From: Zootoca vivipara | Lineage: Eukaryota | DNA length: 64,000 nt | Direction: 5' to 3' | Assembly (NCBI RefSeq): GCF_963506605.1 | Contig: NC_083280.1 | Span: 36,270,001 to 36,334,000 of the forward strand | Shown: positions 22,903 through 64,000 of the stretch, one piece after another | How positions within the stretch are numbered: position 1 is the stretch's first letter | Layout: every line of letters starts with the position of its first letter | The notes under the pieces: generated by a model | Databases searched by the model: none | Told to the model about the DNA's origin: nothing | What the model saw: the letters and a program-made list of their open reading frames with translations, nothing else | Translations under genes and position numbers: made by a program

Positions 22903-23168
22903 CTATAAGGATTAGAAACATAGGTTTTTGAATATGACAGCAAGAGCTATACTACATGCCCCAAATAGGACTATATTCATTTAGTTAAACCAATACTTGG
23001 GGTCTACAATGCAGTAGAGGCAGAACAGCATAGGTGCTAACTATGTTGTACAAGGTTTGAAAGTGTACTATTGGAATGGAGATATTCCTGGTAGGTATCA
23101 AAATAAAGATGTTCTTTAGTATATATAAAAAGGGATTGACAGTTAACACATTTTTGTGAGAGCCACCT

Positions 23169-23358
23169 CTTCCAGTAGCACCTTAGAGACCAACTAAGTT
23201 TGCCATTGGTATGAGCTTTCATGTGCATGCACACTTCTTCAGATGAGCACACGAAAGCTCATACCAATGACAAACTTAGTTGGTCTCTAAGGTGCTACTG
23301 GAAGGGGGGAAAAATTATTTTGTTTCGACTACACCAGACCAACACGGCTACCTACCTG
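23169..23358. mobile_element. Penelope-like element remnant (inverted pLTR fragments)
   Basis: 58-bp inverted arms at 23169-23226 and 23247-23304, followed by a cagaccaacacggctacc end; contains a CTGAAGA...GAAAGCTC motif. Confidence 0.7.
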
Positions 23359-25305: not shown

Positions 25306-26281
25306 CTGTGATTCAAGGAAAAACAACATTAGTGCTCAGATCTTAAAAAGAAATTGGACAATATATGAGATCAGAAAAGTAAGCTTTTTGGTTTCTTAAA
25401 TAAAATGACATTTCATAATACATTAGCTTTGCATGTTATGTTCTTTGAAATACCCAACTGAAACAGCAGCCTACACAAATGAATGAAACAGAAATAGATT
25501 ATCTTTCCCTCTTTTTGTATCTTGGTTAGGCAAATTATTATTAATACTTATTAAAATTATTTATCACCCTTCCTCCAAAAATCACAGGGTAGTTTACAAC
25601 AAAAAACAGCATATGCTGTTCACAAATTCATATGGGCAGCCAATTTTCAGTAAGACAGTTCACAGGGCATTACGATTTACAGTGTCGAAGGCCTTAGTCA
25701 GGTCAATAAACATCATATGCAGGGGCTGGTTTTGCCCTCTGCATTTTTCTTGAAGCTTTAGAGTAGTGAAAATCATGTCCACTGAAGGTCAAAAACCATT
25801 TTGGGATTCAGGAAGGGTAGCCTAGGATATAGTTAGGAGATGGTTTGCTAAGATTCTTGCAAGAATTTTGCTGGCCGCAACTAATGAAGACATGTCTCAA
25901 TAGTTTCCGCAATCCGTTTTATCACCTTTTTTTAAAAAAGGTTGATAATTTTGGCATCCCTAAAGTCTGCTGGGATCTCCTCTCTCCCCCAGATTTTTTC
26001 AATGAGCTTGTGAAGTTGTTGTGTAAGTTCAACTCCACCCACTTTGAAGACTTCAGCAGGTATCCCATCAGGTCCGCTGGCTTTGTTGTTTTTCATTTGG
26101 TTAATAGCTGTACACAACTCTCCCAGATTGGAGATACTGCATGCTCATCTCTAATTTGTTTTTGCAGAATTTGTGAGAGGGCCTCAGCAGCTATGGGGGA
26201 GTTGCGGTTAAGGAGATGCTGGTAATGTTATTTCCAGTGCAATGCAATAGCTTCTTTATCTTGGTGTGGTACCATCTGTTG

Positions 26282-27264
26282 TTGTCTTTGTCCATGGAGT
26301 TTTCTTGGCAGGGATACGGGAGTGGCTTGCCAGTTCCTGCTCCAGGTTCAAAATTGGGAAAGGAGTACGACAAGGCTGTATATTGTCTCCCTGCTTATTT
26401 AACTTATATGCAGAATTCATCATGCGAAAGGTTGGACTGGATGAATCCCAAACCGGAATTAAGATTGCTGGAAGAAATATCAACAAACTCAGAGATCCTG
26501 ATGACACAACCTTGATGGCAGAAAGTGAGGGGGAATTAAAGAACCTTTTAAAGAGGGTAAAAGAGGAGAGCACAAAATATGGTCTGAAGCTCAACATCAA
26601 AAAAACTAATATCATGGCCACTGGTCCCATCACCTCCTGGCAAATAGAAGGGGGGGAAATGGAGGCAGTGAGAGATTTTACTTTCTTGGGTTCCATGATC
26701 ACTGTAGATGGCGACAGCAGTCATGAAATTAAAAGACGCCTGCTTCCTGGGAGAAAAGCAATGACAAACCTAGACAGCATCTTAAAAAGCAGAGACATCA
26801 CCTTGCCGACAAAGGTCTGTATAGTTAAAGCTATGGTTTTCCCAGTAGTGATGTATGGAAGTGATAGTTGGACCATAAAGAATGCTGATGGCTGAAGAAT
26901 TGATGCTTTTGAATTCTGGTGCTGGAGGAGACTCTTGAGAGTCCCATGGACTGCAAGAAACCTATCCATTCTTAGGGAAATCAGCCCTGAGTGCTCACTG
27001 GAAGGACAGATCCTGAAGCTGAGGCTCTAATACTTGGCTACCTCATGAGAAGAGAGGACTCCCTGGAAAATACCCTGATGTTGGGAAAGATTGAGGGCAC
27101 AAGGAGAAGGGGACGACAGAGGATGAGATGGTTGGACAGTGTTGTCGAAGCTACCAACATGAGTCTGACCAAACTGCAGGAGGCAGTGGAAGACAGGAGT
27201 GCCTGGCGTGCTATGGTCCATGGGGTCACGAAGAGTCGGACACTACTAAACCACTAAACAACAA
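26282..27264 (+). mobile_element. Bov-B (RTE) LINE, 5'-truncated, with a 64-bp inverted 5' segment
   Basis: RT FKIGKGVRQGCILSPCLFNLYAE...DDTTLMAESE; Bov-B 3' end ggggtcacgaagagtcggacac...aacaacaa; 11-bp TSD accatctgttg at 26271-26281 and 27265-27275. Confidence 0.92.
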
Positions 27265-27933
27265 ACCATCTGTTGAACATAGGGGGCATATGCCATGATT
27301 TATTGACCCACATTGTGAATGTCGGCTACGTGCTGGATCTCTTGAGCTTTTTTTTATCTACCAGGTGCTCTTTAGTTCTCTGGTTCTTCTTTGAACCTCA
27401 GCCTTAGCGTTGGCATAGGGTTTTTCCTTAGTGGTGCAATTTCTATCTCTTTGCCAGATCTGAAAGGCCTTCCTTTTTGTCAATAATGTGTTCAATCTCA
27501 CTTTCATTCTCATCAAACCAGTCCTGGTGTTTCTTGGTTTGGTATCCAATAGTTTGTTCACAGGCTGCAATAATGGATGTTTTTAGTCCAGTGTTCCTAG
27601 ATGTTATCAGGGAACTCCAAAAGCAGCTGGTCCTTAAGAGTCGTTTGGAAGCAATCCCACTTTAATAGGAGCTTGAAGGGCTTCATTTTGCGCCTTGTTT
27701 CCTTCCTTGGTATAATATTGATAGCCATCGTGGAACGTATTAATCAGTGATCTGTCCAGCAGTCATCAGCACTCGTCTTAGCTCTGGTAAGGAGCACATC
27801 GCGGCGATCTTTAGACAATTACATAGTCTAAGAGATGCCAGTGGTTCAACCGAGGGTGCCTCCATGATGTTTTAAATTTATTTATTTTGTTGAAAGTGTG
27901 TTGGTAATAACAAGGTTGTGCGCTGCACATATA

Positions 27934-29661
27934 CCGTGTTTCCCCCTTTTTAAGACACCGTCTTATAACTTTTTTTCCTCAAAAAAAACCACGGTGTCTT
28001 ATTTTCAGGGGATGTCTTAAGGCTTGGTGCTCTGTGCAATCACACATGACACTTTCTGGCACATGCAGATACAGATCAGCTGTAGCGCTGAAATCAGCTG
28101 TTCCTGGTTCAGGTGTAGCGCGCGCCCAGCGAAGTCAGCCCTGAGAAGGGAAAATGGCATTTAAAAATGCCATTTGAAGTGATTTTAGCCTGTCGCCCAG
28201 AACCGGCTGCTGCAGCGCGGAGCGCCCAGCAGCGCCCGGGGGGAGCGCCCAGCAACACGGACAGAGCGCTCAGCAGCACCAGGAGGAGCGTCCCACCGTG
28301 CCAGGCGGCGGGGTGGCAGGCCACCTTGGCATGGCGAGGAAGAGACGAGGCCGCTGGCTCGGGCGCTCCTGAGTCCTGACCCCAGCCGCTTCTACGCGGC
28401 AGCAGCAAAAGAGCCATGCGGCCACATGGAGAGGCTAGCGCCCGAGCGGGAGACGCGATCTCTGCAAAGCTCTGCACTCACTTCATCCGCCCGACGGGAA
28501 AGCGAAGTGGGGAAGAGAAAAAGAGAAAAAACCGAAGCGGCTCTTTTTCTCTTCCCCACTTCACTTTCCCGTCGGGCGGATGAAGTGAGTGCAGAGCTTT
28601 GCAGAGATCGCGTCTCCCGCTCGGCCACATGGAGAGGCGAGCGCCTGAGCGGGAGACGCGCTCTCTGCAAAGCTCTGCACTCACTTCATCCGCCCGACGG
28701 GAAAGCGAAGTGGGGAAGAGAAAAAGAGCCGCTTCGGTTTTTTCTCTTTTTCTCTTCCCCACTTCGCTTTCCCGTCGGGCGGATGAAGTGAGTGCAGAGC
28801 TTTGCAGAGATCGCGTCTCCCGCTCGGCCACATGGAGAGGCGAGCGCCTGAGCGGGAGACGCGCTCTCTGCAAAGCTCTGCACTCACTTCATCCGCCCGA
28901 CGGGAAAGCGAAGTGGGGAAGAGAAAAAGAGAAAAAACCGAAGCGGCTCTTTTTCTCTTCCCCACTTCGCTTTCCCGTCGGGCGGATGAAGTGAGTGCAG
29001 AGCTTTGCAGAGAGCGCGTCTCCCGCTCAGGCGCTCGCCTCTCCATGTGGCCGAGCGGGAGACGCGATCTCTGCAAAGCTCTGCACTCACTTCATCCGCC
29101 CGACGGGAAAGCGAAGTGGGGAAGAGAAAAAGAGCCGCTTCGGTTTTTTCTCTTTTTCTCTTCCCCACTTCGCTTTCCCGTCGGGCGGATGAAGTGAGTG
29201 CAGAGCTTTGCAGAGAGCGCGTCTCCCGCTCGGGCGCTCGCCTCTCCATGTGGCCGCACGTCTCTTTTGCTGCTGCCGCGTAGAAGCGGCTGGGGTCAGG
29301 ACTCAGGAGCGCCCGAGCCAGCGGCCTCGTCTCTTCCTCGCCATGCCAAGGAGGCCTGCCACCCCGCCGCCTGGCACGGTGGGACGCTCCTCCTGGTGCT
29401 GCTGAGCGCTCCGTCCGTGTTGCTGGGCGCTCCGCCCGGCGCTGCTGCGCGCTGCAGCAGCCGGTTCCAGGCGGCGGGGAGGCAAGCTGAAATCACTTCA
29501 AACGGCGTTTTTAAACGCCATTTTACCTCCTGGTTCCAGGCCCCCAGTTGGCAGGCATGGGGGTATGTCTTATTTTCAGGGTATGTCTTATATTTCTCAA
29601 ATGCTTAAAATTGTTGCCCTGGCTTACTTTTTGACTACGTATTAAAAAAGGGGAAACACGG
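27934..29661. mobile_element. Non-autonomous Tc1/mariner (Tc2-like, CCGT termini) element with palindromic cargo
   Basis: TA|CCGTGTTTCCCC...GGGGAAACACGG|TA with subterminal GTCTTATTTTC repeats. Removing it plus one TA restores the host RTE reading frame. Confidence 0.88.
28151..29524. repeat. 1.37-kb nested palindrome: 270-bp outer arms enclosing eight alternating 84-bp arms (203-bp period)
   Basis: L-Y-A X A'-Y-A X' A'-Y-A X A'-Y'-A X' A'-Y'-L', read directly from the sequence; centre at 28837/28838. Confidence 0.95.
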
Positions 29662-32600
29662 TAGTCAAAAATAAGATTCCATTCTGGTTGTTGTTGCCAA
29701 TTCCTTCTTCCCAATAGTCCCAGGCCACAGATCAAAATCTCGCCCAACTCTTGCATTAAAATCACCCAGGAGGAAAATTTTATCCTCCTTAGATGTCTCT
29801 GATAGGATGGCACCCAGCTGAGAATGAAATTTTTATTTAATGTCTTTACTGGCATCCGATCTTCGAGTTTCTTGAAGCACTGCAAAATTGAAGTATTCTC
29901 TTGCAATGGTAGCAGTCCTGCGTTTGGGACGCTCATCATCTGTGTTGTCTAATGAAGTCTGTATATTCCATGTTCCAAAATTCAATTGTCTTTTATGACC
30001 ACTGGGGAGGCAGACAATATTTACTGCACCTTTTCTAGCCCCTCCCCCTTTCTGGGGTGAGCAGAGTGGATCCTAAATAGGACTGCTATGTTGTGGATAC
30101 AGCTGCCAAGCTACTCAACCGCCTCATTCCTTGAGTCAGAACGAATGAATCTGTATCCACCACCCATCTGCCGGTTCATGACTAGTGGCTTCCAGATTTC
30201 ATAGTCCTGCCTGTTACCATTTGCCGATCGCCATGAGACTTTTTGGGGGTTTGGGATCGGTTTTTGGGTGATGCCTCTGCATAATTTGTTTTATGTGTGT
30301 AGATCAGTGCACGCTGACCAACGCAGAGTCTTCGCAGTAATGCTCTATTCTGATGGCATGAGTATCACAACAACTGGTAGATTTTTATCTGCTGCAGCCT
30401 TCATCCGCCTTCACAGCCATTCTAACATACTGCTTGTTATCTTTCGCCTGTTCTGTCGTTGAGGACTTCTACGATCATTCTTTGTCTAGTTCCTCCCTTT
30501 TGACCTTACCACCTTGGGTGACCCTGCTGGGAGTACAAGACTCCCAAGAGCTTCGCTCACAAGGGTCATAGGAATGTGCAAGCCCACTCATCACGACAAG
30601 GTGATGATCCAGTGGGGTGGATTATCATTAAACAAGGTAACTGGGGTGAAGTAACTGTGAAGTAACTGGGGTGGTCAGTTCTGCTTCACTCCCATGTAGT
30701 CCAGGCAGAAATTAAAGGAGTGAGTGAATATGGCGCCTCCCATAGATAAGATGCCTCTTTGCTGGGGTGTGAGAAGGACTCCTAGCTATATTAAAATACC
30801 CCACAAACATGGGGATCATTCAGCTCAATGCACCATCTCTCCTCTTTCCATGAGCTATAAACAGTTAAACCAATCCTAGTATGCATTCCCAACAAATAAG
30901 TTCTCCTGATTTAAGAGGACATGCTTCAAAGTAAAAGAGCTTAAGATTCCTGCCACTCTCTCTAGTTTGTACTATCTAGAACTTCAGCATAGCATTAACA
31001 TACATATCAAGGTTGCAGCTGCAAAATGTATTTTCAGCTCATACATCAGTTGAAAACAGATATTAAAAAATTATATTTGTATCTAAACAGTCTTCCATTT
31101 TACACCTCTTGTGCTTTGGATCATGTATGATGAACATTCATTTAAATCTGGCCAAATTAATCTAATTAAGAATTCATCATTAGCCCTTAAACAAATAAAA
31201 CTATTTTTGTACTTTTATTATCTCAATGGACATGAGAAAGTTGATGAACAGGATTATGCATCCCAATTAAGAACTTGTCCCAAGGGACATTTTCCCTGAC
31301 AGACTGATAACAGGGGATAAATATTTTCTTGGTATATACTAAGATACATTTGTCTCCTTTTAATAGATGATATGTACTTCCTTACATTGAAAAGAAGTTA
31401 AATAGTGAACTTGACCTTTTCCTTTTACTAAAAAGGCAGAATGATTCTGTTTTCCTCTCTTTACTTAATTCTACATTCTAAATATTTTTTAAGATGTGGA
31501 ATTTAGTAAAATAATTATTCTCAGCCACAATACTTGATGTAGGCCTGATGTATTCACTACAGAATTTAACACAGCAGCAAGTAATAACACCATAATGATT
31601 TACAACTATACAATGTAGTAATATTGTAATTTTTTGCCCCAAACACAGTAAATCTGAACTTACAATAAAATAAGTTAGAAAAAGTACAGTCAATTTTATC
31701 TTTGTTATTGAACACACTTTTAGAGATATTAGTTCCCCACTCCCACAAAGGAGGCAAACAGAAAGTTTCAATTACATCAGTCTAGCCAGTAAAAAAAACC
31801 TTCCTAACAAACAATAGCTTGCTAGGATAAAGGGAATACTCAATACTATTATGGTCACTTAGGAGTTCTGACACCACATTTCAAAGGTACATTAGCTTCC
31901 CTAGGGTAAAGTTACTTTGACGTTAAGGATTCAGTAGCACAGACCAATTAAAGCAAGGTGATTTAACTTGGTGCAACAGATTATGAAAACAAAAAACAAA
32001 GAACTGCCTCTTGCAGCACCAGTTTAAACTGCTCATGTAATCTAACAAAGTTTACATGGCAATTTTATGTATATCTACTCAGAAATAAGTGCATATAGAA
32101 TTGCAGCCTTAATTTGTCAGTGAGTCCTAGAACACATAGAGGGGGATAACTTCATCTCAGGAAAAGGCTGGAAGAAGGTTGGAGAAGACTGCTAAGTGGT
32201 GGCCTAAGAGAAATTTGTAAAATTATGAACAATATATAGACAGTATTACCAGACATTCTACTCTCTCAAGATTGGTATTCAAGATCATTAAACAAACTGA
32301 CAGACAGTAAGTTCAGGACAGAAGACGGACTTCTTTAAACAGTTCACAATTAATCTATGAAATGCCTTGTCACAAGACCGTCACTAACCTTAGAAACAAT
32401 GTGTTACCACCAGCTGCCTCCCCTCATGCCCTTAAACATCCATTGCTAGGGTCCATGTTACATTAGTAGAACTGTATTTTGTTGTCTTTATTATGTGTGT
32501 TGCCTAATTCATGCAGTTACAATTTTTCTTAAATACCCAGATATAAAGTCGCCCTGTAGAAATTCTGTTTAGTAAGTATCTGATAACAATGAATACTTCT

Positions 32601-42992: not shown

Positions 42993-43085
42993 CAGGGGTC
43001 AGCAAACTTTTTCCGCAGGGAGCCGGTCCACTGTCCCTCAGACCTTGTAGAGGGCTGGACTATATATTTAAAAATGAATTCCTAT
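42993..43085. mobile_element. hAT-type MITE left-end fragment
   Basis: CAGGGGTCAGCAAACTTTT terminus; no right end seen. Confidence 0.5.
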
Positions 43086-43099
43086 GCACACTGCGAGGG

Positions 43100-43550
43100 G
43101 GGTAAGTAGTCCTCCTCCCAGGCCCAGCCGCCTCCCCGGTTTGCCGCCTGCCTCATTCACCAAAGGCGGTGGTGGCGCGAAACGGGCTTCCTCCCCACCT
43201 AAAGAAGGTGCTATGCTTACCTTCCCAGGGGGTGCCGCTGCTGTCACCACCACCACCGCTTCTTGTGAAGTGGGTAAGCAGAGCAAGCTCATCCGGTCCT
43301 CTCTCTGGCCCACAGGAGCACCAGGGCGGTGGGAAGAAGAGGCCGAGCGGCGGCGGCTCTGCCAATCAAACGCCACCGAGGTAAACCAGGCGCGGCGTTT
43401 GATTGGCAGAGCGGCCTCCACTCGGCCTCTTCCTCCTGTCGCCATTGCCGGGAGTCTTGGCTTCGAAACGGGTTCCGGCTTCACAGCCCGGGCCAGATCT
43501 AGGAGCCAGGTTGGCCTGATTCGACCCGGGGCCTTAGTTTGCCGCCCCCT
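43100..43550. promoter_or_regulatory. RNF168 proximal CpG-rich promoter / probable non-coding first exon
   Basis: CpG-rich, with two opposed CCAAT boxes (43362-43366, 43402-43406) and a minus-strand donor AAG|gtaagc at about 43220. Confidence 0.65.
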
Positions 43551-50250: not shown

Positions 50251-50919
50251 GCCAGCCAGGACATCCAAGTTTAGCTTATTAACACATGCCCACAAGCACG
50301 TTGTTTATTGAACCACAGCGGATCAGTTGTGACAGTTACTTTCACACAAACTACACTAACCTGTTAAATTACTAATTTTTATCTTATGTCTGTTTAGATT
50401 CACATTGAGTTGCTATGTGGGAGGTACAGCAGCTTACTGCTTCAATCTTTATATATTTAAAATATTAGTAACCCATGTTAAATACATCTCTTTTCATTTA
50501 CACCGTTTATGGTAAGTTGCTGCTCAGCTCCCAATACCCATCTGTAGCAATATACATGGGTCACATCAGGTACAAAGAGAACATGTATGAAGAAATTGCC
50601 ACCCCTCTCTACTTAAACATATCTATACCTACACATACACAAAACGTGAAAGGAACACATCTATTTTAAAGTATAAAAAAACTAGCTACCCGTATTTATA
50701 GATACATTTATCTCATTTGTCCTCTGGTCCTGATACAAGAGTACAAATGACTTCTGTATTTTGTTATTAGAACCAGAAGACAAAATCTGTTCCAAGAAGC
50801 AGGTACTTAACCTATTAGACATTCATTCATATTGCATGCAGAGCAGGGTCAAATATGTAGTGGTTCCAAAACTGTGCAGCAATTTGCTCAGAATATATGG
50901 CAGTTTATATCAATAAGTA

Positions 50920-51154
50920 CCCTGTTTCTCATATTTTAAGACATACCCATAAAATAAGCCATAGCAGGATTTTTAAGCATTCAAGGAATATAAGCCATAC
51001 CCCGAAAATAAGACATAGTGATAGGCGCAGCAGCAATGCCGGCTGCGGCAGGAGGAGGAGGAAAAAAATAAGACATCCCTTGAAAATAAGCCATAGTGTG
51101 TTTTTTTGAGGAAAAAATAAATATAAGACATGTCTTATAATATGAGAAACACGG
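50920..51154. mobile_element. Short (235-bp) Tc2-like MITE with the same backbone as 27934-29661, opposite orientation
   Basis: TA|CCCTGTTTCTCATATT...AATATGAGAAACACGG|TA. Shares AAAATAAG(A/C)CAT repeats, tttaagcatt and tttttttgaggaaaaaa blocks. Confidence 0.8.
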
Positions 51155-51226
51155 TAAGTAAGTAAGTAAGTAAGTACATAAGTACATACATACATACATA
51201 CATACATACAAACAAACAAACATACA
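51155..51226. repeat. Compound tetranucleotide microsatellite (TAAG)n(TACA)n(AACA)n
   Basis: Read directly; begins at the MITE's TA. Confidence 0.9.
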
Positions 51227-61908: not shown

Positions 61909-62194
61909 CAGTAGTACCTTTGGTTACGGCAGGATCCGTTCCGGAAGCCCGGCCGTATCCCGAAAAGTCCGTAACCGGAGGCACCCTTCTGTGCATGCAC
62001 GCGGCGCGATTAAGTGCTTCTGCGCGCGCACGGAGATCGCTTCTGCGCATATGGCCAGATCGTTTCTGCGCATACGGCCAGATCGTTTCTGCGCATGTGC
62101 GTGCAGCAAAACCCGGACATATATACTGCCGTGTTTGCCGCGTTCGCAACCCAAAGATTACGTATCCAGGGATACGTAATCCGAGATACCACTG
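61909..62194. mobile_element. Tigger-like MITE with internal 22-bp tandem repeat
   Basis: TA|CAGTAGTACCTTTGGTTACG ... CGTAATCCGAGATACCACTG|TA; agatcg(c/t)ttctgcgcat x3. Confidence 0.8.
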
Positions 62195-62631
62195 TATTTC
62201 AATCTTTAGCATAAATAAATTGAACTTCAAACAGGAATCAAATTACTGACACAACTATGGAGTCTGCCCTTTCGTTATATTAATGGCTGAGAAACATTTT
62301 ACAAGGCTAATTTGTTGTGGATAAAGAAAGCACCTTCAGATGATGGAGCAACTGCATTTCCCCGTTCTTTGGCATCCATATCCTGCACAGCTTGTATGTC
62401 TTAATCGTGTAAGTCCACAGGCTGGTTCTTGGTACTAAAGTGCTATTTTGTTCTGCCTTAGACATCTATTTATTTAGTGTAGAGTGAGAAAACACTTTCA
62501 GTGCAGTCCTGGGCATTCCCCCCCCCCTAAGAAGCAAGCCCCACTATGTCCAGTGGGGTGTACTCCGAGGTAAGTATGTGTAGGATTGTGGCCTTTGGGA
62601 GGAAATGAGGTATTGTTTACATTCTTTACAT

Positions 62632-62767
62632 CAGGCACCCCCAAACTTCGGCCCTCCAGATGTTTTGGACTACAATTCCCATCTTCCCAGACCACTGGTC
62701 CTGTTAGCTAGGGATCATGGGAGTTGTAGGCCAAAACATCTGGAGGGCTGCAGTTTGGGGATGCCTG
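62632..62767. mobile_element. hAT-type palindromic MITE
   Basis: CAGGCACCCCCAAACT...AGTTTGGGGATGCCTG with 8-bp TSD ctttacat; same family as 53914-54050. Confidence 0.9.
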
Positions 62768-64000
62768 CTTTACATCATAATCATAATTATGCGGTCTCGC
62801 AGACATATAGTTCCTTAGATGTGCAAAAAGAGAACAATTCCCTTAGGCATTCTTATTTTTGTTAAAGCCGGGGAAAGCTGCTAAACACTACCTTTGTTTT
62901 TTTTTTTAATAGGCTGAAGAGTTCATTCTTGCTGCATGCAAGGTTTAAAATGGCAATCCAGTATCTTTGGTAGTGCCATCAGTCCTCAATACTTAAAAAC
63001 ATACTACATTGGTCATGCTGTGACCTTCCCAGCAACCTAGCCTTCTTGCTGTAGGCTTAGCCATCATGTTCCCTGTCCTACCATCTTGACATACTAATGC
63101 ATCTTGCTTTACTATTGTTTCCAAACCCCTCTGCTCCCTTGTAGAAGCTGCAGAAGGAAGTTACGGTGGATTATTGGTTTGGGACTGCTAGTATTCTTTG
63201 GTTGGTGGCATAGGACTGTAGTGAATGGCATCACACTAGGCAGAAAGAGGCTCTTTTATGAGGCTGCTGAAAGTGTGAAGGATAAAATGTGGATCCAAAA
63301 AAAGGGCAGTGACTTTACTGGCGGAGTCTATGTTGCATGTTCTCAGCTGTTCAGGTTTTCCTAGTTCTTCACTTCACTTTCCTTCCATGTTCAGATTCCG
63401 CAAAACTGCATTTGAGGTCTTCATGTGCGAATAAATGTTTTTAAAATATTTGTTCTATGTGTAGTATGCCGCTTAACAAGTTCATTCCTGGTCTTTCTAA
63501 AATTAAGCAAATGAATCATTTCAACACTGGTACTACGAAGAAATGAATGATTTTGGAAAGATGTATCACTTCCAGAAAACGTTGACTGTATTCTATGCTA
63601 TAAAATATATCACTACAAGATTCTATGGCATGAGCTAAAATAAAAGGAAAGAAGCTTTTGTTAGAGTAATATAGTCTCCCTGTGCAGTCTCGGATGGATT
63701 ACCCTCTGCACTTATTTATGGACTTTCGAGTAGAGAGAGCTGGTCCTAAGAACTGTGTCAGGGAAAATTTTGCTAGGTTTTACCTTCCATTTATACAGGA
63801 TGTCTTGCTCGCTTTACCCTTACATGTGGCATAGCATTCTGCTTGTGCCAAGTGGTTAAAAATTCCTTGGGGCACAGGGACAAATATGTATATAAACCTC
63901 TTATAACTTATTACCTGAAGACCAACTCCAAGCTGTACAAACAACTGAAATAAATTGTTAAAACATAAATATACTACTCTGTATTATTGTGTGTTATAAT

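Follow-up and report, generated by a model that had tools for sequence, protein, structure and literature searches.

Several systems have been described in which inverted repeats give rise to further inverted copies. In yeast, hairpin-mediated fold-back inversions are known that can occur two or more times in succession, giving three to six copies (PMC7467729, PMC10622511). Inverted triplications arise via forward-reverse-forward switching between inverted repeats (PMC11790251; bioRxiv 10.1101/2025.01.14.632981). Among mobile elements, Tetris (PMC4079207) and Galileo (PMC4168063) are transposons with repeat-rich inverted interiors, and for the GC-rich cargo of Pack-TIR elements (TIR, terminal inverted repeat), template switching has been proposed as the origin (PMC8277862). 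Here, we describe a related arrangement in the lizard Zootoca vivipara, in a window of 64,000 nucleotides (NC_083280.1, positions 36,270,001 to 36,334,000 of the forward strand; all coordinates below are those of the window), where a TA-flanked miniature inverted-repeat transposable element (MITE) at 27934–29661 encloses a CpG-rich palindromic block. We estimate a probability of about 50% that the core of this block was built in 203-bp steps, by slippage and template switching between inverted arms, within a MITE cargo that was already palindromic and multi-copy.

In the yeast fold-back inversions, as in the MITE, inverted copies are seeded by inverted repeats that enclose a short asymmetric loop, and this loop becomes the non-palindromic centre. 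However, the yeast events are chromosome-scale and follow breaks, whereas the MITE units measure 203 bp and lie inside a transposon; moreover, the first junction in the MITE resembles a direct slippage duplication, and the later ones are copies of it rather than fresh fold-backs. In duplication–inverted triplication–duplication rearrangements (DUP-TRP/INV-DUP) and in origin-dependent inverted-repeat amplification (ODIRA), direct-inverted-direct copies are made in one event, and the MITE layout can likewise be reproduced by three switches from a four-arm intermediate. Inverted triplications, though, extend over kilobases to megabases, as opposed to 203 bp in the MITE, in which neither a replication origin nor selection for amplification is evident.

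Foldback-type transposons (Drosophila FB, Galileo, Tetris) are, like the MITE, non-autonomous DNA transposons with an interior of expanding and rearranging inverted and tandem repeats. While they carry tandem repeats within long terminal inverted repeats, the MITE has short, 12-nt TIRs with a TA duplication, and an internal CpG-rich palindrome with alternating arms. With the Pack-TIR elements it shares the TIR transposon that carries GC-rich foreign DNA, the proposed template-switch origin and a multi-copy cargo family; it differs from them in that no parental gene was found for its cargo, and nested palindromes do not feature in descriptions of Pack-TIR elements, the text of PMC8277862 containing neither "palindrom" nor "hairpin".

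An initial annotation of this locus, made from the sequence alone, had drawn an analogy with the flip/flop hairpins of parvovirus inverted terminal repeats and poxvirus termini. In both, as in the MITE, one loop is found in both orientations beside identical stems. The viral hairpins, however, form the termini of linear replicons and switch orientation from molecule to molecule by hairpin transfer, whereas both orientations in the MITE are part of one integrated molecule, 500–800 nt from the transposon ends, and the element has no nickase or Rep gene. Rolling-hairpin replicons are defined by hairpins at their physical ends together with a nicking or resolution site; the MITE is not organized in this way, its hairpins being internal rather than at molecular ends, and the analogy thus fails on its defining feature.

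The anatomy of the block, which was established by reading 27900–29800, by a mechanical repeat search and by a base-by-base check, can be read directly from the assembled sequence. Eight 84-nt arms (A) in strictly alternating orientation, separated by spacers X and Y, had been proposed, and this was confirmed base for base. The arms start at 28442, 28541, 28645, 28744, 28848, 28947, 29051 and 29150, with 0, 1, 2, 0, 2, 2, 0 and 1 mismatches to A1, respectively. Spacer X (15 nt, AAAAAACCGAAGCGG) is present in exact copies at 28526 (+), 28729 (−), 28932 (+) and 29135 (−), and spacer Y (20 nt, CCACATGGAGAGGCGAGCGC) in exact copies at 28625 (+), 28828 (+), 29031 (−) and 29234 (−); an additional Y copy at 28422 (+) differs by one change, G>T.

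The repeat search also recovered all of the nested palindromes that had been claimed at every level. Each X is centred between 84-nt palindrome arms, the third X being the centre of a perfect 188-nt inverted pair; palindrome arms of 181 nt and 204 nt surround the Y spacers at 28625 and 29031; and the central Y is flanked by 590-nt arms (98%). A total of 1374 nt are predicted to fold into one continuous DNA hairpin (−958.7 kcal/mol), while the core is reported by Tandem Repeats Finder as 4.0 copies of a 203-bp unit (90%) or 2.0 copies of a 406-bp unit. The repeats themselves are far beyond chance. The 270-bp inverted arms reported on either side of the core, L and L', hold up only in part: their inner ~180 nt are near-identical (4 differences), but their outer ~90 nt differ by many substitutions and indels. 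The components of the palindromic block, with the evidence for each in brackets, are as follows.

28151–28421, + strand: outer inverted arm L, which contains a 22-bp repeat (repeat search, L/L' alignment; depth ~10–30 times that of the unique flanks)
28422–28441, + strand: Y0, outer Y spacer, G>T variant (base check; multi-copy L-Y0-A1 joint)
28442–28525, + strand: arm A1, C at position 2 and A at position 17 (base check)
28526–28540, + strand: spacer X1 (base check)
28541–28624, − strand: arm A2, C,A, with one private change (base check)
28625–28644, + strand: internal spacer Y1, with the new A'>Y junction to its left (base check)
28645–28728, + strand: arm A3, T,C (base check)
28729–28743, − strand: spacer X2 (base check)
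28744–28827, − strand: arm A4, C,A (base check)
28828–28847, + strand: central spacer Yc, centre of the palindrome with 590-nt arms (repeat search, fold, base check)
28848–28931, + strand: arm A5, T,C (base check)
28932–28946, + strand: spacer X3, centre of the perfect 188-nt palindrome (repeat search)
28947–29030, − strand: arm A6, T,C (base check)
29031–29050, − strand: internal spacer Y3 (base check)
29051–29134, + strand: arm A7, C,A (base check)
29135–29149, − strand: spacer X4 (base check)
29150–29233, − strand: arm A8, C,C, likely the ancestral right-arm type (base check, history search)
29234–29253, − strand: Y4, outer Y spacer (base check)
29254–29524, − strand: outer inverted arm L' (repeat search, L/L' alignment)

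Three sites among these copies are informative. At arm position 2 (C/T, a CpG), T is found in A3, A5 and A6 and C in the other arms; at arm position 17 (A/C), A is found in A1, A2, A4 and A7 and C in A3, A5, A6 and A8. Accordingly, A1, A2, A4 and A7 are of the C,A type, A3, A5 and A6 are of the T,C type, and A8 is C,C, a single CpG>TpG step away from T,C. Position 15 of Y is T in Y0 only and G in all other Ys, so that the internal Ys all carry the G of the right-hand Y4 and none the T of Y0.

At every internal Y, a C,A arm lies on the side of the new junction and a T,C arm on the side of the original one. The new junction joins A' to Y+ at CGG, and the microhomology that had been noted there is real, since both L and A' end in CGG. 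Over 24 nt or more to either side, the three internal Y junctions show no difference from one another, linked variants included, and they therefore descend from one junction, as the initial annotation had concluded. The two arms that flank the centre of a fold-back are of one type, and a further fold-back would create a centre of its own rather than copying the existing one. In this array, the same asymmetric variant pair is repeated at all three internal Ys, so that the central junction is a copy of an earlier one and did not arise anew. Furthermore, as the left-arm type is found at the new junction, and the right-arm type together with the right-hand Y at the old junction, the first junction has the marker pattern left by a slippage-type, direct duplication of the unit A X A' Y' at the right-hand end, and not that of a fold-back. 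Neither are the variants mirror-symmetric: the pairs A1/A8, A4/A5 and A2/A3 differ at informative sites, and a mirror-image origin requires 5 extra changes.

The differences between the mirror halves shrink inward, from many in outer L, to 4 in 180 in inner L, to 0–2 per arm in the core and none in X and Y1. This gradient indicates that the long palindrome L-Y-A-X-A'-Y'-L' is older, and that the expansion of the core is the youngest layer.

Possible histories were compared by an exhaustive backward search, in which copied 2-, 4- or 6-arm blocks were removed in either orientation at a cost of 1 per event and 1 per label mismatch. The cheapest history, at cost 4, consists of three single-unit (203-bp) duplications and one change: from an ancestor Y+ a X- r' Y-, a direct 2-arm duplication with one change would be followed by two inverted 2-arm insertions without mismatch. 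It exists in two equivalent orders and takes the number of arms through 2>4>6>8. The strict 2>4>8 doubling path costs 7 (2 duplications and 5 base changes). A separate search under stricter token rules found one 5-event history. In addition, the 4-arm intermediate Y+ a X+ a' Y+ c X- r' Y- can be turned into the final layout, as four blocks, in one event with three template switches.

We therefore favour a stepwise origin, for which the starting cargo would be a long CpG-rich palindrome L-Y-A-X-A'-Y'-L' within the MITE. Its core would grow in 203-bp steps, each of two arms, one X and one Y, through mis-copying between inverted arms during replication or repair. The markers point to a first step in which the right-hand unit A X A' Y' was duplicated directly at the 3-nt CGG/CCG microhomology, creating the sole new junction; an A-X-A' hairpin in the nascent strand, by returning the 3' CGG/CCG by 203 nt, would plausibly have aided this step. 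A single CpG>TpG change adjoining the new junction would have come next. Two more 203-bp units may then have entered as inverted copies, via switches within identical arms, or, alternatively, in one complex event with three switches. These inverted insertions would spread the junction and its linked variants to three places, flipping X and Y. The shared junction and the marker pattern are observed directly; the order and type of the events, and a chemistry of replication slippage and template switching, are our inference. The mechanisms on which this history draws are established ones, namely hairpin-mediated fold-back inversion in yeast (PMC7467729, PMC10622511) and template switching in Pack-TIR formation (PMC8277862). 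The flipped X and Y spacers require at least some inverted copying between arms; to that extent, the fold-back growth originally proposed is borne out, but doubling of the whole structure is not the best fit, given the asymmetric junctions and a cost of 7 versus 4.

To assess copy number and joints, we used contigs from two Logan sets, one (X1) possibly derived from the sample behind the assembly and the other (X15) from a different study, as well as raw Illumina reads from two runs of different studies, X21 and X22, of which about 6% each was used, giving roughly 1x coverage. Reads of 150 nt and contigs of k=31 tie between identical arms, tied reads stack at one place, the pieces considered are the longest ones, and A-X+-A' and A-X--A', being reverse complements, are indistinguishable to both. 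The multi-copy nature of the backbone and of the outer cargo is seen directly in these data. The backbone ends occur in hundreds of copies, with a raw-read depth over 27906–28006 of ~100–200 per strand versus ~1–3 in unique bins, and most family reads join 28019 to about 29564. L has ~10–30 times unique depth. A contig of set X15 that matches 28337–28488 without a mismatch has a depth of 430, versus ~50 for unique contigs, which makes the L-Y0(T)-A1 joint part of a multi-copy cargo family. Over six interior core bins, mean depth is ~1.2 in run X21 and ~2.4 in run X22, near unique depth and not one quarter of it. The bin 28815–28915, which duplicates the sequence of 28612–28712, has no coverage in the contig sets and hardly any in the raw reads.

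Other copies of the family contain L'-to-L back-joints (29371>28204 and 29478>28346, with 9–10 nt of filler), a deletion joint between L and L' (28233>29307) and a strand-switch joint (28090>29530), and the cargo family appears to be structurally unstable in general. Joints of this kind, from L' into L or between opposite strands, show that the inverted parts have been rearranged repeatedly in this MITE cargo family.

The recursive formula that had been given for the array (S1=AXA', S2=S1+Y+rc(S1), S3=S2+Y+rc(S2), where rc is the reverse complement) is a correct description of the sequence: the rule S(n+1)=S(n), s, rc(S(n)) holds at every level, and the spacer orientations read + + - + + - -, the paper-folding order. 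The accompanying caveat, that few orientations are free, was also right. With the signs of X and Y fixed by their first occurrence, 5 orientations are free and the two-level recursion fixes 4 of them, so that a recursive order is expected in 2/32 orientation patterns (1 in 16). We also simulated a null model, in which, after one event that creates a junction, arm-pair units are inserted at random by homology, direct or inverted, until there are eight arms; 6–19% of these stepwise products showed the fully recursive order, the range being set by the weighting of events. The paper-folding order is thus not far beyond chance and is suggestive at best; on the stepwise reading it is the outcome of a few inverted copies, and it is not evidence for doubling.

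Strict iterative fold-back doubling, in which the whole structure is copied inverted twice (2>4>8 arms) with Y left at each new centre, would give exactly the observed spacer order, as well as a block that is palindromic throughout (590-nt arms, 98%) and folds as one hairpin, and successive fold-back inversions are known in yeast (PMC7467729). We nevertheless consider it rather unlikely, as it needs 5 extra base changes at two informative sites (cost 7 versus 4), as the central junction is an exact asymmetric copy of an older junction and not the product of a fresh fold-back, as L and L' are not recent mutual copies, which places the ends outside any doubling, and as the same order arises by chance in 6–19% of random stepwise histories. 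A tandem array of four 203-bp units produced by ordinary duplication, with later inversion of X and Y by recombination between the flanking inverted arms, would agree with the tandem reading of the core (203 bp x 4.0 at 90%); inverted 84-nt arms lie beside every spacer, so that each can flip, and histories with one inversion cost only 5. Reasoning from the layouts, though, a pure 4-unit array needs at least 4 separate flips besides the duplications, and a single inverted copy is the simpler explanation of the perfect 188-nt palindrome around X3; we consider this route unlikely. It is more improbable still that the array is an assembly artefact, the true locus having fewer arms (e.g., one A-X-A' hairpin) that were expanded by the assembler or in the long reads. 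In its favour, the array is not spanned by any read or contig, the interior bins have very low Illumina depth and the internal junctions lack contigs in set X15. Against it, the mean interior depth in runs X21 and X22 (about 1.2 and 2.4) is near unique depth, where a single hairpin spread over eight positions would give one quarter, and contigs of set X1 cover the junction bins. Hairpins are under-represented in short-read libraries, and read chimeras due to missed adapters or fold-back produce one large palindrome at an arbitrary point, not arms with a 203-bp period and consistent linked variants.

Several observations also weigh against the stepwise origin that we favour. Informative sites number only three, two in the arms and one in Y; histories with one inversion, at cost 5, are numerous; and if a two-site patch is counted as a single gene-conversion event, strict doubling costs ~5 versus 4. 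The parsimony margin is modest, given the few informative sites and the possibility of gene conversion, but its direction is away from clean doubling; the true history may also have been erased by gene conversion between arms. Across the core, the Illumina reads give low and uneven depth, and the internal Y junctions are without any contig in set X15, although contigs of set X1 do cover the junction bins. As no read or contig spans the array, the short reads neither confirm nor refute the 8-arm order, for which the assembly is the sole source.

The element that carries the array is a non-autonomous Tc1/mariner-type transposon, with a TA duplication, 12-nt TIRs and hundreds of short relatives. 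Its borders read TA-CCGTGTTTCCCC ... GGGGAAACACGG-TA (27932–29663). The 12-nt TIR CCGTGTTTCCCC has exactly 2 matches in the window, at 27934 (+) and 29650–29661 (−), where ~0.08 would be expected by chance. As in other MITEs of the Tc1/mariner type, the TA duplication surrounds the TIRs, and there are many short non-coding copies with common ends; an autonomous element having a DDE/D transposase and matching ends was not found within the window. The parts of the element outside the palindrome are as follows.

27932–27933, no strand: TA target-site duplication, 5' copy (sequence; TA also on both sides of the relative at 50916–51160)
27934–28019, + strand: 5' end of the MITE backbone, with the TIR CCGTGTTTCCCC and subterminal (A/G)TGTCTTA motifs (sequence comparison; read depth)
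28020–28150, + strand: cargo segment without a right-hand mirror partner (outside the palindrome; absent from the short relative)
29564–29661, + strand: 3' end of the MITE backbone, with the TIR (TIR, short relative, reads)
29662–29663, no strand: TA target-site duplication, 3' copy (sequence; flank-to-flank joint with a single TA)

A cargo-free relative of 240 bp is present in the same window (50916–51160, − strand). It has TA on both sides, ends that are ~80% identical to those of the MITE, repeated (A/G)TGTCTTA subterminal motifs and a short GC-rich stretch (CCTCCTGCCGCAGCCGGC...) as its centre. Because this relative matches the ends only (27932–28019 and about 29521/29564–29663), we regard 28020 to about 29563 as cargo. 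L, the core and L' have a GC content of 0.55–0.68 and an observed/expected CpG ratio of 0.8–1.07, which is CpG-island-like; the ratio is 0.51 in the unpaired segment 28020–28150 and 0.28–0.30 in the flanks. A derivation of the L arm from the MITE's own GC-rich centre, which in the short copy contains a similar CCGGC/GCTGC stretch, was considered and dropped, as the similarity is too weak.

The MITE lies ~1 kb downstream of an open reading frame (ORF; 26266–26892, + strand, 209 aa) that encodes a reverse-transcriptase domain (RVT_1, E=1.3e-14), and the flanks are themselves repeated; the MITE thus lies in or beside a long interspersed nuclear element (LINE). A joint of the two flanks that leaves a single TA (27931>29662) is found in one contig of set X1 (depth 58) and in one read each of runs X21 and X22, and represents either an insertion-free allele or a paralogue of the repeated LINE-like flank. 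Two further joints, 27932>29665 (with CA between) and 27932>29708, indicate that the flank is a multi-copy repeat.

A source sequence for the cargo was not found within the window, and searches of 5.8 billion and 1.84 billion proteins returned no relatives of the 131-aa core ORF or of the 136-aa ORF across A8-Y4-L'; a coding or gene-fragment origin of the cargo is unsupported. Rfam returned 128 miRNA-precursor-like matches on both strands, all below the gathering threshold (best 129 versus 168). We dropped the identification as a microRNA precursor, since sub-threshold matches on both strands are a generic response to a perfect hairpin.

Some additional repeats were noted. L and L' contain a 22-bp tandem repeat (~3 copies, consensus CGCTCCGCCCGGTGCTGCTGAG; 28215–28260 and 29385–29453) that holds most of the L/L' indels. 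At the outer edge of each L arm there is a small secondary hairpin (28161–28185, AAATGGCATTTAAAAATGCCATTT, and its diverged mirror, 29494–29520), and these hairpins have weak, sub-threshold histone stem-loop matches in Rfam. Elsewhere in the window, a separate palindrome at 23166–23307 (61-nt arms, 95%, 20-nt loop) is AT-moderate and resembles a small hairpin repeat. A GC-rich palindrome at 43325–43443 (50-nt arms, 86%) lies inside a GC-rich block (~43080–43540), and each of its arms has an inverted CCAAT-box-like motif (GCCAATCAAACGCC / GGCGTTTGATTGGC). A further palindrome, with arms of 62 nt (85%), lies at 62627–62772, not far from a 23-bp tandem repeat of 2.7 copies at 62034–62096.

In a limited literature search, we found no paper on a four-level nested palindrome in a MITE, none joining paper-folding or dragon-curve sequences to palindromes, and nothing relevant on lacertid MITEs. 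The locus is an example of inverted-repeat-driven template switching and does not reveal a new mechanism, nor does its paper-folding order speak for one. Template-switch models are usually inferred from far larger and messier rearrangements. If the assembled order is real, this array is an unusually legible, small-scale record of inverted repeats breeding inverted repeats, all within 800 bp, and its one microhomology junction, one linked mutation and junction copies in both orientations make it a natural test case for such models. It also illustrates that a near-perfect hairpin of 1.4 kb can be part of a mobile element, which would bear on replication stability, on sequencing coverage and possibly on small-RNA production. 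A broader proposal, that the palindromic cargo of this MITE family grows systematically through hairpin-driven inverted copying coupled to transposition or excision-gap repair, with regular chains or nests of hairpins at many loci, seems doubtful to us; if it were true, such elements would be mobile sources of kilobase-long hairpin DNA or RNA.

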